Shown here: positions 30,607 through 48,420 of the stretch, in pieces | Numbering within the stretch: the first letter of the stretch is position 1 | Layout of the letters: each line of letters starts with the position of its first letter | NCBI GenBank assembly: GCA_002269645.1 | Contig: NIVC01002696.1 | Coordinates: 1 to 64,000, forward strand | Length of the DNA stretch: 64,000 bases | Source of the DNA: Macrostomum lignano | Taxonomy: Eukaryota | Direction: 5' to 3' | Position numbers and translations under genes: made by a program | The notes under the pieces: model-generated | Database searches by the model: none | What the model was told of the DNA's origin: nothing | The model's input: only the letters and a program-made list of their open reading frames with translations

Positions 30607-31182
30607 AGTAGTAGTATGTTATAAAGGGTTGCGCCACACTTATTGCTCGGGCGCATTGCGCGCCAGCTCGCTGGATGACTCAACCCTTTATAACATACTA
30701 CTACTACCATGAGGTCATGGGTTCAAGTGGGGTGTGATAAATATAAAAATATATAAATATACATATATCTGTGACTGAGGGTGTTGAGGGTGAGGGCATG
30801 TGGGGGGCATTGGCCTGTGGTATATTTCTCAGAAGACAGAATTTCCGGATTTTTTATACTTTTAAAAAGGGGGGGTGCCCTCGCCCTCATGCCCTCACTC
30901 ATTTTGAAAATCACTAAAAATAAGTGAAAAATGACTAAAAACAGGCGAAAATGGTCTGAAAACAGCGATTTTTTGTGATTTTCAAAAATTTTGAAAAAGT
31001 GCAATTTTCACGATTCCAGCTCTAAAACCATGAGAAAAGTTGGATTCACGGGTCAATTTAATGCAATTTCAGGTATATACAATATGAAAGTGTCATCCAA
31101 TTCAACGATAGTAAATTATATATATATAAAATGGCCTTCAGTAAACCATTATTTCTAGGAAATGCTTTAGATATTCAGTCAG
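30607..31182 (+). repeat. Left terminal inverted repeat (576 bp)
   Basis: Reverse complement of 47845-48420 with about 6 substitutions and no net indel. Confidence 0.95.
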
Positions 31183-33369
31183 CTATAACAAAACTACCAC
31201 CCATCTTCGCCACTGGAAAATACCCAGGAGAACTTCATATTCCAGGGTATTCTTTTGCAGGTTACGTAGTGGCCTGAGTGAGGAAGTCAATGTCCTTGCT
31301 AGTCATCAAATAAGCACTTGTTAAAGTTTCTATAGTAAAAATGGAGCAAACAATTCGAGAAATTCTTCTGAAACCAATTGATGATAAGGTTGGGCATGAT
31401 CAAATTCTTCATGATCTTTTCCAAGAAGAGTTAATAATTTCACACAAGATTAAAGTTATTCAAATGAGACTAGGCAGACTATATGAAATATTAGCAGAAA
31501 ATTATTTTGGATTCGAGAAGGTAAAAAAGATAGACCTGGTTCACGTTGAGCGAAAGATTGCATTAGAGCTTAAATCTTCTGATAACACGGACAATTCATC
31601 AAGTCGTGAAAGGAATTATCAGAAACTATTAGACTATAAAAATTCTTATCCCACCTATCAGTTGTATTATGTATGCATCAATAAAACTACAAAGGAACCT
31701 AAGAATATTTTACTAGACAATGGAATCACCCTTATAACAGGAGAATTTGCATTGAAATTTCTTTATGGTGATCAATACAAAAACATTATAACCAACATTA
31801 AACAAGTGCTTAGTGATTGGCGACACCTTCAAATTGCGGGAACTCCGTCCGATTCTAGTACGTCAATAACAGCCTCAAGTACCACTTCAGTTGAGAAATC
31901 TTCTGAAGGAACACAGGTAATTCCTGTTCCCAATCGGACTTCGTCCGCGAACCTATGGTTCGATGGTAACAAGCTTGAGGACATGGTGGAAATCCGCAGC
32001 CAAGCTCCTAAGTCCGAACGAAGTTGACAAGGATATGGAGAAGGTTCAGAGACTTAATGGGGGTGGGGCTGAAGGATCTGGTCAATCCTGATGAAGCCTT
32101 AAGATAAAGTCCAGCCTCTTTCGAAAGATTGAGGAACAACTGCCGGGTACAAATTTAGACAAGAGACTCAATCCAATTACAGACCGGCCTCGGTATGACA
32201 GTCTACCAATTAACCCAATCGATTGGACTGCTTACTATCATGACAAAAACTATAGAGATGCTGAAAACACTTCTTCAAATCCAGAGGAAGCTCTAGCAAA
32301 GAAGCATATAGCTGATGAAAAAATGATAGCTGATTTAGATGCTATTCCAACCAGTGACTTGTCTGTGAAAGAGAGACTCATTCGAAATCTAGTAAAGCGT
32401 ATTATCAAGGCTAAAGTTCGGTTTGGATTAGGCATTCATACTCACAACCCCAACAATTGTATAGACTGTCTAACAATTTATGGTAAGGGTCTTAGCTATG
32501 AAGATGCAGTAAAATTGCATAAAGAATATCGAAAGCCAAGAGTATTTAGAAAAATGATTCACTATGCAAAAGACACAATTTGGCATGCAGATATCATTAT
32601 CCTTCCTCCTGAAAGAGGTTACAAATATGCTCTCACTATCATAGATGGTTTTACACGTTACGCCTGGGCAGTTCCTTTGAAAACAAAGACGGGAGCGGAA
32701 GTTGCAGAAGCTTTCCAAAAAGTATTTAAGGAATCAGGAAGACGACCAGAGAGACTTTGTGTAGATGAAGGCAAGGAGTTTTATAATCAGCATATGTACA
32801 AGCTATATTCGTTTTCAAAAGACAACATTAGAAAGAAGGATGAAAAGGGTGAATATATAAACAAGATGTTTTCAATTTATGGCGAGTCCAAGAATGCAAT
32901 GATTGAGAGGTTCAATCGTACTCTCACAAATAAACTCTGGTTTGAATTTGATCTACAGGGTAATCAGAAGTGGCTCCACACATTGCCAGCTATTGTTGAA
33001 AAATACAACAACACAATCCATTCTGAGATTCTGATAACTCCTTCAGAAGCATCTAAACATCCTGAGCGAGTACCAAAGCCAACTTTCGAGTATTCAAATG
33101 AGAAACCAAACTTCAAAGTAGGTGACAAAGTTCATATCTATAGATATAAGGAGCACTTTGAAAAGGGTCGAAGAGGATATTGGAAAATTTCAGAAGTGTT
33201 TAGGATAAAGAAAATAGTTTACTCAAATCCCATAACTTACATAATTGAGGATGAGAATGGAGAAGAAATCATTGGATCATTTTACAAATCCCAGCTTCTA
33301 CCAGCAAATTTTTCAACTAAAAATGAGCGCCTATCGAACAAACTGCAAACGGGCGAAAGGTCAGATTGA
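31131..33369 (+). CDS. PLA2 (parvovirus-type phospholipase A2)-rve integrase fusion; join(31131..31262,32143..33369), 452 aa
   Basis: Spliced product reads ELHIPGYSFAG|PGTNLDKRL...PINPIDWTAYYHDKNY...KHIADEKM (PLA2 calcium loop and HD catalytic motif), then in frame the DDE integrase (HADII / VDEGKEF / IERFNRTL) and the typical C-terminal FKVGDKV...EIIGSFY domain. Confidence 0.9.
31263..32142 (+). ncRNA. Group I intron, IC1-like, 880 nt, ORF-containing
   Basis: P1 with U31262.G31272 wobble (CAGGU/GCCUG); P AAATTGCGGGAA at 31831; Q AATCCGCAGC at 31991; R GTTCAGAGACTTA at 32044; S AAGATAAAGTCC at 32101; P3 CACCTTCA/TGGGGGTG; P7 GACTT/AAGTC; P5a with A-rich bulge; P9 GAAA loop; P9.0; terminal G32142; removal restores the PLA2 frame and motif. 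Confidence 0.95.
31341..32027 (+). CDS. Intron-encoded PD-(D/E)XK endonuclease, Eco47II-like restriction endonuclease family
   Basis: Q..LGRLYE helix; ID...ALELK catalytic motif; NTDNSSS....YQKL resembles the Eco47II-family KNKxNTMNS...YxK pattern (recalled from memory, not searched). Confidence 0.7.
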   Translation: MEQTIREILLKPIDDKVGHDQILHDLFQEELIISHKIKVIQMRLGRLYEILAENYFGFEKVKKIDLVHVERKIALELKSSDNTDNSSSRERNYQKLLDYKNSYPTYQLYYVCINKTTKEPKNILLDNGITLITGEFALKFLYGDQYKNIITNIKQVLSDWRHLQIAGTPSDSSTSITASSTTSVEKSSEGTQVIPVPNRTSSANLWFDGNKLEDMVEIRSQAPKSERS

Positions 33370-33745
33370 AACGTCTGATTCACAACTACTAGCTGATAAA
33401 GAGGGTGAAGGAATTGGTGATATGATCAGTGGTGTCACAAACTTTTTATCAAATCATGGAAGTAAAATTGTGAGTGGAGCTGATGCAATAGGTAAAACAG
33501 CTACCACAGCGAAGAACATATTCGATGCGAAGAAATCATACAGTGACATGTCTAAAGCAGGTGAGGAACTGGAATATATTAAAAAGAAACGTAGAGATAA
33601 AGAAGCAAAGAAAATAATGGAAGAAGAGCAACAGATAGCTTCTCAATCAAATAAGGCTATTCAAGATATTGTTAAAAAGGCTCTAGGAACAGCAGAACAG
33701 TCTCAAGTGTCTTTGAGACAAGGCAATGGTTTGAAGAAATTCTGA
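33323..33745 (+). CDS. Putative virion core protein (basic/coiled, with GEGI and GNGL motifs)
   Basis: ORF with an AAAAATG start between the integrase and capsid genes. Confidence 0.55.
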   Translation: MSAYRTNCKRAKGQIETSDSQLLADKEGEGIGDMISGVTNFLSNHGSKIVSGADAIGKTATTAKNIFDAKKSYSDMSKAGEELEYIKKKRRDKEAKKIMEEEQQIASQSNKAIQDIVKKALGTAEQSQVSLRQGNGLKKF

Positions 33746-33753
33746 CCTTAAAA

Positions 33754-47036: not shown

Positions 47037-47061
47037 TTTTAAGAAAAAAAATTAAACAGAC

Positions 47062-47832
47062 TCAAGCATAGGGGGGTGCACTTGGAGCATTTGATTGAAG
47101 ATTGAGTGTTGCCGAGTACTCTTTTGGCTTATCGGCTAGACCCAATTTTTCTCTCAGATCTTTCTCCAGCAGTTCCTTTTTAATTTTTTCCTTCGCTGAA
47201 TGACCAAGTCTACTCTCTTTGAGAATTTTATCAACGACTTCCGAATGGTTAACATCTTCAGGCGCAACACAGGCGTCTAACAATTGGTCTCTTTTCTCTC
47301 TGTATTCTGAATAAATTGCAGCAGCTGCTTGAACCTCTTCAAGAGTTAATCTATAATCATCAACTGCTTTTTGGGAGTAAATATACAATCTCTCTCTGTA
47401 TTTATTGGCCAGATCTCTGAGAACAATGTATTTTGCCTTCTGCTTTTGGCAATGAATTTTCACAGTTGCAAACAACGACGTGGATTTTACAGCTTCAAAA
47501 CCACTCATTGCCCCGATTACTACTCCAATGACTAAGGGATTCAATGTCAGTATCGATGTTGCTATGCCAATTCCTGTAGCAGCCAAGAGACTTACATTTC
47601 CTGTCACAATGTTGATCCAATTTATCCTGCTACTTTGTCGTTTGTACTTTTTTACCTTTTTGCTATAAATTGTAAGATCTTTCGTAATGCATTCAATACT
47701 GCCTTTGATTTCACCCTTTCTCTGATTGAAATAGTCCCGCTCCCTCAAATCTGCTTCATGCAGCTCAACCACAGGATAGATGTGTTCATTTTTATCATTC
47801 ATTTTTATATGGCGATTATGCCTAATTGTCAA
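47062..47832 (-). CDS. Polinton membrane-hairpin protein with C-terminal PSAPPY
   Basis: Hydrophobic hairpin followed by the K.K...LA....SQKAVDD..L..EE...Y motif seen in invertebrate Polintons. Confidence 0.7.
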   Translation of the reverse strand: MTIRHNRHIKMNDKNEHIYPVVELHEADLRERDYFNQRKGEIKGSIECITKDLTIYSKKVKKYKRQSSRINWINIVTGNVSLLAATGIGIATSILTLNPLVIGVVIGAMSGFEAVKSTSLFATVKIHCQKQKAKYIVLRDLANKYRERLYIYSQKAVDDYRLTLEEVQAAAAIYSEYREKRDQLLDACVAPEDVNHSEVVDKILKESRLGHSAKEKIKKELLEKDLREKLGLADKPKEYSATLNLQSNAPSAPPYA

Positions 47833-47844
47833 TTATGTCTATAC

Positions 47845-48420
47845 CTGACTGAATATCTAAAGCATTTCCTAGAAATAATGGTTTACTGAAGGCCATTTTA
47901 TATATATATAATTTACTATCGTTGAATTGGATGACACTTTCATATTGTATATACCTGAAATTGCATTAAATTGACCCGTGAATCCAACTTTTCTCATGGT
48001 TTTAGAGCTGGAATCGTGAAAATTGCACTTTTTCAAAATTTTTGAAAATCACAAAAAATCGCTGTTTTCAGACCATTTTCACCTGTTTTTAGTCATTTTT
48101 CAGTTATTTTTAGTGATTTTCAAAATGAGTGAGGGCATGAGGGCGAGGGCACCCCCCCTTTTTAAAAGTATAAAAAATCCGGAAATTCTGTCTTCTGAGA
48201 AATATACCACAGGCCAATGCCCCCCACATGCCCTCACCCTCAACACCCTCAGTCACAGATATATGTATATTTATATATTTTTATATTTATCACACCCCAC
48301 TTGAACCCATGACCTCCTGATAGTAGTAGTATGTTATAAGGGGTTGAGTCATCCAGCGAGCTGGCGCGCAATGCGCCCGAGCAATAAGTGTGGCGCAACC
48401 CCTTATAACATACTACTACT
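47845..48420 (-). repeat. Right terminal inverted repeat (576 bp)
   Basis: Matches the left TIR. Confidence 0.95.

Follow-up and report, generated by a model that had tools for sequence, protein, structure and literature searches.

The genome assembly Mlig_3_7 of the flatworm Macrostomum lignano (GCA_002269645.1, contig NIVC01002696.1; PMC10733133) contains a Polinton/Maverick-type mobile element from which the five-base-pair (bp) sequence GGNCC is completely absent. The element is 17,814 bp long with a guanine-cytosine (GC) content of 36.3%, and occupies positions 30607-48420 (+) of the 64,000-nucleotide stretch of this contig analysed here, hereafter the window. A group I intron splits its gene for a fused phospholipase A2 (PLA2) and integrase, and within this intron lies an open reading frame (ORF) for a nuclease related to the bacterial restriction enzyme Eco47II. 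The explanation that we favour, with a probability of about 0.7, is that the intron nuclease cuts GGNCC, that the intron splits the enzyme's own site, that intron-less alleles are cut, and that elements exposed to the enzyme have shed all other sites.

By computed scan, the window has 47 copies of GGNCC, none of them between 29202 and 48653. The whole element lies inside this gap, which at 19,451 bp exceeds every other in the window, the runner-up measuring 5.5 kb. Markov models of orders 0, 1, 2 and 3 expect 19.4, 20.8, 19.1 and 12.9 sites in the element, respectively. When all 136 patterns of the form XYNZW are ranked with strands merged, GGNCC shows the strongest depletion, with a Poisson P of 5e-9; the next pattern has 5e-5. 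In the set of 16 palindromic NNxNN patterns, the lowest ratio of observed to expected counts after that of GGNCC is 0.81. Control sequences occur in the element at normal frequency (20 GGCC, 4 GGATCC, and 20 CCNGG against 21 expected), and no palindrome of 4 or 6 bp shows a comparable absence. The original prediction had put the count in the element at zero where about 19 sites were expected, had called GGCC, GGATCC and CCNGG undepleted, and had located GGNCC outside the element at 29141, 48653, 48783 and 52671. The scan agrees with all of this, the expectation being that of orders 0-2.

Outside the element, the flanks contain 47 GGNCC sites where about 100 are expected, and 50 CCNGG where 97 are expected. 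Since the flanks are as low in CCNGG as in GGNCC, a specific depletion of host DNA was considered and rejected; the roughly two-fold shortfall reflects patchy composition. Decay of a once-methylated GGNCC by deamination was likewise rejected. The transition neighbours of the site, AGNCC/GGNCT and GANCC/GGNTC, stand at 0.75 and 0.88 of expectation and are thus not enriched, which is unlike the loss of a methylated site by deamination.

Removal of GGNCC acts at two levels, namely the choice of synonymous codons and the absence of Gly-Pro from all of the element's proteins. Gly-Pro is always encoded as GGN CCN, so that every Gly-Pro codon pair makes a GGNCC site. This dipeptide does not occur once in the element's 5,079 codons, where 8.7 are expected, whereas Pro-Gly occurs 12 times. 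When synonymous codons were shuffled with the protein sequences fixed, 8.3 ± 2.7 GGNCC sites were obtained, and none of 1,000 shuffles reached the observed zero. GGNCC is thus missing from the other reading frames as well. CCNGG was normal in the same test, with 18 observed against 20.3 expected.

By its match to Rfam RF00028, which scores 88.9 bits (gathering threshold 50) over 31750-32133, the interrupting sequence is a group I intron, predicted to be self-splicing. The closest relative, locus L097, yields a match of 65.3 bits to the same model. The ends of the intron were fixed by comparison with a 75%-identical, intron-less homologue (P0017). The homologue reads HIPGYSFAGPGTNLDKRLNP unbroken, whereas in the window the same stretch is split between exon 1 and exon 2; removal of the intron restores the reading frame, making the two exons collinear with the homologue. 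The junctions read ...GCAGGT/TACG...GGCCTG and ...CTG/CCGGGT, the intron ending in G, so that it is inserted between the Gly (GGT) and Pro (CCG) codons of the PLA2 calcium-loop motif. In the predicted P1 helix, CAGGU pairs with GCCUG, with U.G at the splice site. The corresponding pairing in relatives is UUAGGU with GCCUAA, a compensatory change from C-G in the window to U-A. An alignment of the intron core from the window and four relatives has 26 of the 66 predicted pairs changed on both sides. For P10, no convincing base-pairing of the intron with the 3' exon emerged. RF00028 misses the introns of L001-L004 and L009 even at E ≤ 0.1, and surveys of AT-rich elements by Rfam alone would accordingly undercount group I introns.

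The nuclease ORF lies inside the intron between P1 and P3, its tail reading through the ribozyme core. By its Pfam match the encoded protein is a member of the Eco47II family (PF09553 RE_Eco47II), scoring 30.1 bits, or 31.0 bits for the domain alone, against a curated cut-off of 25.9. An Eco47II homologue has been assigned the recognition sequence GGNCC (PMC10305163). A profile search with the nuclease gathered 320 cluster representatives, and of 47 that were sampled, 41 match PF09553 and nothing else. The catalytic residues D65...E76-x-K78 show no variation in 14-15 homologues and almost none in the 47. Among the nuclease ORFs of three relatives, the ratio of non-synonymous to synonymous substitution rates (dN/dS) is about 0.2, which indicates purifying selection. 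An AlphaFold (AF2) model of the nuclease has a predicted local distance difference test (pLDDT) score of 87. In a fold search of 350,542 PDB chains, the three best matches to this model belong to two entries of EcoO109I (E = 6e-5, template modelling (TM) score 0.62-0.66), an enzyme that cuts RG^GNCCY (PMC3089450). This relationship was found by the fold search alone, a PDB sequence search with the nuclease returning nothing meaningful. Several other searches with the nuclease were also empty: an exact-protein look-up found no record, an NCBIfam scan no match, and tblastn against plasmids no match, while look-ups of its clusters gave no informative names. Nor did IMG/VR yield a match, whether scanned with the alignment of the nuclease or with the degenerate pattern ELK...TDNSSSR. 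Taken together, the Rfam match and the Pfam score above the curated cut-off bear out the claim of an intron nuclease in the original prediction. The loss of a 5-bp site throughout the element points to a short target, which would be atypical of homing endonucleases.

The insertion point of the intron coincides with a GGNCC site. Exon 1 ends in GGT and exon 2 starts with CC, and removal of the intron therefore recreates the sequence. Intron-less relatives carry GGNCC exactly there, in keeping with the earlier suggestion that intron-less competitors could be targets of the enzyme. In the 75%-identical, intron-less locus L006, the sole GGNCC of the contig falls exactly on the Gly-Pro codons at the insertion site (GCA GGG CCA GGT); L015 and L016 have GGNCC at the same Gly-Pro position, as do 8 out of another 10 PLA2-integrase loci without the intron, all from JGI metagenomes. 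L007 and L008 instead read Gly-Ala at this position, which leaves no GGNCC there, and both are without any site. The intron itself sits at GGT/CC in the window and in L002, L003, L004 and L009. One junction each is available for L001, on the 5' side (...GGT/, the locus ending before the 3' end), and for L097, on the 3' side (/CCAGGT, together with its Rfam match).

The relatives also differ in where the nuclease resides. It lies within the intron in the window element, L001-L004 and L097. L007 has a free-standing homologue immediately upstream of its PLA2-integrase gene, and in L015 a free-standing Eco47II-like homologue (Pfam 37.7 bits) is located elsewhere in the element, at 8135-8722. The intron of L009 (3272-3581), only 310 nt long, is without an ORF. 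The free-standing gene of L007, the ORF-less intron of L009 and the intron-borne nuclease look like stages in the entry of a nuclease into an intron. A comparable route was reportedly described by Bonocora and Shub, and also by Zeng et al., for cyanophage psbA and F-CphI, where a free-standing endonuclease that targets the intron insertion site is said to move into the intron. L009 (IMG/VR 3300027939_000003) additionally has an ORF at 2804-3145, just upstream of its PLA2-integrase gene, whose N-terminus was assigned by eye as GIY-YIG-like.

Among the relatives, expected counts were calculated with an order-1 Markov model. The element parts of the seven relatives with a nuclease or the intron (L002, L003, L004, L007, L015, L097 and L009) have 2 GGNCC together, where about 29 are expected, and 45 CCNGG against about 29. 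One of the two GGNCC is the Gly-Pro site of L015. Two further members of the subclade, whose 11-12 kb of available sequence showed no nuclease, are similar: L008 has no GGNCC (6.4 expected) and 10 CCNGG (6.5 expected), and L016 has one GGNCC (4.4 expected), which is its Gly-Pro site, and 6 CCNGG (4.4 expected). By contrast, L019, a Polinton-like locus with a PLA2-integrase and neither nuclease nor intron, has 10 GGNCC against 11.4 expected and 14 CCNGG against 11.1. Viral contigs L010-L014 have 42 GGNCC (52.7 expected) and 45 CCNGG (52.8 expected), and the remaining 70 JGI loci have 204 GGNCC (279 expected) and 289 CCNGG (278 expected). The integrase of L009 is 33% identical to that of the window element and the integrase of L019 is 39% identical, yet L009 has the intron and the purge (0 GGNCC against 6.1 expected) whereas L019 has neither. 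Being more distant and nevertheless purged, L009 indicates that the purge tracks association with the intron and nuclease and not overall relatedness.

The original prediction had raised the question whether depletion tracks the presence of the intron or nuclease across Polinton families, and had counted equal depletion in relatives lacking the nuclease against itself. Depletion does follow the relatives with nuclease or intron, and is absent from L019 and the outgroups. The second point partly applies, since L008 and L016, and L009 with its ORF-less intron, are also purged. GGNCC avoidance is thus a property of the subclade, and is probably best read as protection from a nuclease that circulates among co-resident elements, with exposure in trans, and not from an element's own copy alone. 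One sample, ERZ25070786, contains both L001 and L003, with the nuclease in the intron, and L007, with a free-standing nuclease and no intron. As a separate observation, genes of long terminal repeat (LTR) retrotransposons lie inside or beside the Polinton copies L003 (6343-9975) and L016 (1800-7673). The retrotransposon insert of L003 carries GGNCC sites, and the surrounding Polinton part has only one.

No DNA methyltransferase was found alongside the nuclease. None of the 17 ORFs of at least 85 aa in the element matches a methyltransferase family in Pfam at E ≤ 0.01, the remaining open segments all being shorter than 125 aa, and no flanking ORF has such a match, in agreement with the earlier statement that no methyltransferase ORF is evident.

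These observations can be combined into a mechanism for the preferred explanation. The intron nuclease would cut the 5-bp sequence GGNCC. Because the intron lies inside the GGNCC of the conserved Gly-Pro in the PLA2 calcium loop, the intron-bearing allele would be free of the site and related intron-less alleles would keep it. Cleavage of an intron-less allele would then either open a route for copying of the intron (homing) or merely damage a competitor. With a 5-bp target and no protective methyltransferase, every other GGNCC would be a liability in exposed elements and would be removed by selection. The anatomy of the element, the site counts, the family of the nuclease, the place of the intron and the pattern among relatives are observed, whereas the activity of the nuclease, a need for GGNCC alone, a drive by homing and any effect on host DNA are inferred. 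The claim that the element has been purged of the target of its own intron nuclease is supported, as far as sequence can tell, by the enzyme family, the fold, the position of the intron inside GGNCC, the failure to find a methyltransferase and the distribution of the purge. For a broader version we see the odds as even: a methylase-free 5-bp nuclease of this Polinton lineage, carried by a self-splicing intron and aimed at the GGNCC of Gly-Pro codon pairs, would both bring about homing of that intron and be turned against sister elements, perhaps against host DNA as well. It would have forced the loss of Gly-Pro and of out-of-frame sites across the subclade and selected Gly-Ala resistance alleles in intron-less competitors.

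Several points weigh against the preferred explanation. Cleavage at GGNCC is something we infer from the family, the EcoO109I-like fold, the total absence of the site and the position of the intron within GGNCC. No Eco47II-like gene was seen in the fetched 11-12 kb of L008 or L016 and yet both are purged, so that the link between the purge and an element's own nuclease gene is not a strict one. Expectations for single relatives are small (3-6 sites, the elements being AT-rich), which makes only the pooled figure strong. In L002-L004 and L009 the introns are recognized through alignment and covariation, Rfam giving no match. L015 retains GGNCC at position 3511, on its Gly-Pro codons and as its only site, despite having a diverged free-standing nuclease, which the simple model leaves unexplained. 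A 5-bp cutter without a methylase should also cut the host, but GGNCC is found in the host flanks at ordinary density, no lower than that of CCNGG. Finally, the scheme requires translation of an ORF that lies in an intron of a nuclear transcript.

The purged relatives that lack a visible nuclease (L008 and L016) or have an ORF-less intron (L009) would be accounted for if the purge had been imposed from outside, by a GGNCC nuclease of the host, of a co-infecting large virus or of other mobile elements, the intron ORF then being a long-target homing endonuclease of Eco47II descent. Site avoidance in viruses usually answers the enzymes of another party, which also favours such a source. It would, however, require three coincidences, in that the element's own nuclease belongs to a GGNCC family, its nearest solved fold recognizes a GGNCC core and the intron lies inside GGNCC. 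Moreover, relative to expectation GGNCC is not scarcer than CCNGG in the host flanks, and L019, a related nuclease-free Polinton from other samples, is not purged. We consider an outside source improbable, and if that source were a sister element of the same subclade, it would merge with the explanation that we prefer.

Alternatively, the purge could be a relic of an ancestor that had a restriction-modification pair or was under GGNCC restriction, the present nuclease being inactive or changed in specificity and the sites not having returned. The site kept by L015 despite its nuclease homologue fits this, as does the nuclease ORF of L002, which has one frame break near its end. Against it stand the dN/dS of about 0.2 and the invariant catalytic motif. 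In addition, the integrases are only 33-46% identical and yet all these elements lack the site, although unselected sites would have returned at about one per 1-2 kb. A relic thus appears more doubtful still than an outside source. The least credible possibility is an artefact of composition or mutation, with a low GC content, the codon usage, a scarcity of Gly-Pro or C-to-T decay driven by methylation as potential causes. Polinton-like contigs in general have somewhat fewer GGNCC than expected (a ratio of 0.73), and the flanks are heterogeneous in composition. The controls refute it nonetheless: Markov orders 0-3 expect 13-21 sites, codon shuffling leaves the site present in every replicate, CCNGG and GGCC are normal, Pro-Gly is present where Gly-Pro is missing, and the transition neighbours are not in excess.

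The carrier is a young, nearly intact Polinton (Maverick) insertion. It has the hallmarks of this group, terminal inverted repeats and a 6-bp target-site duplication, as well as the core genes for a protein-primed family B DNA polymerase (PolB), an rve integrase, a double-jelly-roll (DJR) capsid protein and an A32-like ATPase (Table 1). The last three were recognized with Pfam (rve, DJR-like_dom, Pox_A32), and PolB by its motifs and homology. In the interrupted gene, a PLA2 domain of parvovirus type is joined to an integrase, and homologues of the gene carry PF08398 Phospholip_A2_4 together with PF00665. PLA2-like genes were already known from Polinton-type elements (PMC8502044). Codons 1-19 of the gene (31131-31187) fall within the left terminal inverted repeat, and the same sequence therefore recurs at the right end.

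Table 1. Features of the Polinton element and its borders, in window coordinates.
Feature	Position	Strand	Description
Target-site duplication, left copy	30601..30606		CGCAGG; direct reading of sequence
Left terminal inverted repeat	30606..31187		582 nt, 99% complementary to right copy; holds start of exon 1 of the PLA2-integrase gene
PLA2-integrase exon 1	31131..31262	+	ends ...PGYSFAG, last codon GGT; collinear with intron-less homologue P0017
Group I intron	31263..32142	+	880 nt; Rfam RF00028
Intron-encoded nuclease ORF	31341..32027	+	228 aa; Eco47II-like PD-(D/E)XK domain at about 31341-31865
PLA2-integrase exon 2	32143..33369	+	PGTNLDKRL..., HDxxY PLA2 motif, then rve integrase core (Pfam rve)
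Double-jelly-roll major capsid protein	34226..35590	+	Pfam PF21738, E = 1.7e-13
A32-like genome-packaging ATPase	35612..36385	+	Pfam PF04665
Conserved 212-aa protein	37276..37914	+	same position in relatives; no Pfam match
Conserved 144-aa protein	37915..38349	+	33-58% identity to relatives' versions; unmatched in Pfam and NCBIfam
F5/8 type C (galactose-binding-like) domain protein	38351..39700	+	Pfam PF00754, PF22633
Primase-polymerase / D5-like helicase	41428..43947	+	Pfam PriCT_2, D5_N; weak Prim-Pol, DUF5906
Protein-primed family B DNA polymerase gene	43969..47036	-	two frames; Pol A/B/C-type motifs; homologous to relatives' PolB
256-aa ORF, weak SLATT-like transmembrane region	47062..47832	-	NCBIfam NF033634, 21 bits, below cut-off of 41
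Right terminal inverted repeat	47840..48421		582 nt; inverted-repeat search
Target-site duplication, right copy	48421..48426		CGCAGG; direct reading of sequence

Some of the remaining genes can be given tentative roles. From its position, the 212-aa protein is possibly a minor capsid (penton) protein. The 144-aa ORF occupies the place expected for an adenain-like cysteine protease and is possibly a maturation protease, and the F5/8 type C protein is a candidate attachment protein. Genes with a SLATT domain, to which the 256-aa ORF bears a weak resemblance, occur in cryptophyte Polinton-like viruses (PMC12220804). The PolB gene consists of two long open stretches joined by a single frame change, with no other break and with the polymerase motifs intact; the frame change may be real or may be an indel error of the PacBio-based long-read assembly. 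The N-terminal part of PolB contains an HNH (Endonuclease VII-like) insert at 45735-45872 (-) (Pfam PF02945), making this a second nuclease of the element, and the PolB of L008 has the same Pfam match. The scan of 4-bp and 6-bp palindromes in the element found no site avoidance linked to this domain.

The non-coding gap of the element (39785-40209) contains a repeat of about 142 nt, with 1.9 tandem copies at 39936-40209 and an earlier partial copy. An inverted copy lies at 49997-50112, about 1.6 kb beyond the right end of the element, and the repeat may be a small separate mobile sequence. In the host flank, the stretches 15001-19300 and 23001-25000 have extreme GC and AT skew and long overlapping ORFs on both strands without a Pfam match, and are probably satellite or simple-repeat DNA. 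On the other side, 3.6 kb from the element, an intron-less ORF of 2,111 aa (52048-58383) has a phage replication-initiation domain as its sole, sub-threshold Pfam match and could be part of another mobile element.

If the preferred explanation is true, it would link bacterial restriction enzymes with eukaryotic selfish introns, fields that are usually separate. A restriction-family nuclease would have its carrier protected purely by site avoidance, strict enough to forbid one dipeptide over about 5,000 codons, and a 5-bp cutter could act as a homing enzyme where a conserved protein motif fixes its target. The relatives would further provide a natural series for free-standing nucleases becoming intron passengers, and would point to nuclease-based competition among Polintons within animal genomes. 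The combination of zero GGNCC with zero Gly-Pro offers a sequence signature for finding further members.

The components are each known already, namely Eco47II-family enzymes, group I introns of Polinton-like viruses, PD-(D/E)XK homing endonucleases, site avoidance and possible restriction-modification pairs of Polinton-like viruses. A literature search found no report that combines a restriction-family nuclease in a Polinton intron, no methylase, and a 5-bp purge down to the dipeptide level with a Gly-Pro target, nor did a search on giant viruses and virophages bring up relevant work on site avoidance. The nuclease resembles the enzymes of Eco47II and Sau96I-type restriction-modification systems, which recognize GGNCC in bacteria, in its PF09553 match, its D...ExK motif, its small domain of about 170 aa and its predicted GGNCC target. 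It differs in that the element is without the cognate C5-methyltransferase, the gene lies in a group I intron of a eukaryotic virus-like transposon, the carrier DNA would be protected by absence of the site instead of modification, and the Pfam match is low (30 bits). EcoO109I (PDB 1WTD/1WTE), the best structural match, likewise has GGNCC as the core of its recognition sequence (PMC3089450), but the two proteins share only 12-13% sequence identity, and EcoO109I is about 270 aa long and needs the flanking R and Y. The sequences at the insertion site here, A-GGTCC-G and A-GGGCC-A, do not fit RGGNCCY.

Intron-encoded homing endonucleases with a PD-(D/E)XK fold are known, I-Ssp6803I being one. As with these enzymes, a restriction-fold nuclease resides here in a group I intron that interrupts its presumed target. 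Classical homing endonucleases, however, read degenerate targets of 14-40 bp and force no loss of a short site on their carrier, whereas the present evidence favours a target of 5 bp and a purge of the whole element. Group I introns have been reported in Polinton-like viruses, 51 in all, and like the present one they lie in protein-coding genes of Polinton-type elements (PMC12220804). Unlike the cryptophyte cluster of that report, in which the intron lies in the gene for an unannotated protein of about 50 aa and no homing endonuclease was identified, the intron described here bears a nuclease, is located in a PLA2-integrase gene and comes from an animal genome assembly.

Type II-type nucleases in eukaryotic viruses or virus-like elements, with a plausible use against hosts or rivals, are also found in the chlorovirus restriction-modification systems and in possible restriction-modification pairs of Polinton-like viruses (bioRxiv 10.64898/2026.06.19.733378). 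Those systems include a methyltransferase that marks their own DNA, whereas none was found here. The closer parallel in this respect is protection through an absent site, as in phage site avoidance and in PacI, a methylase-less rare cutter whose host genome lacks its 8-bp site, rare by composition. In phages, however, the avoided enzyme is that of the host, and the PacI site is 8 bp long; here it is a 5-bp site, of which about 20 copies are expected, that has been purged from 17.8 kb down to the level of amino acids.

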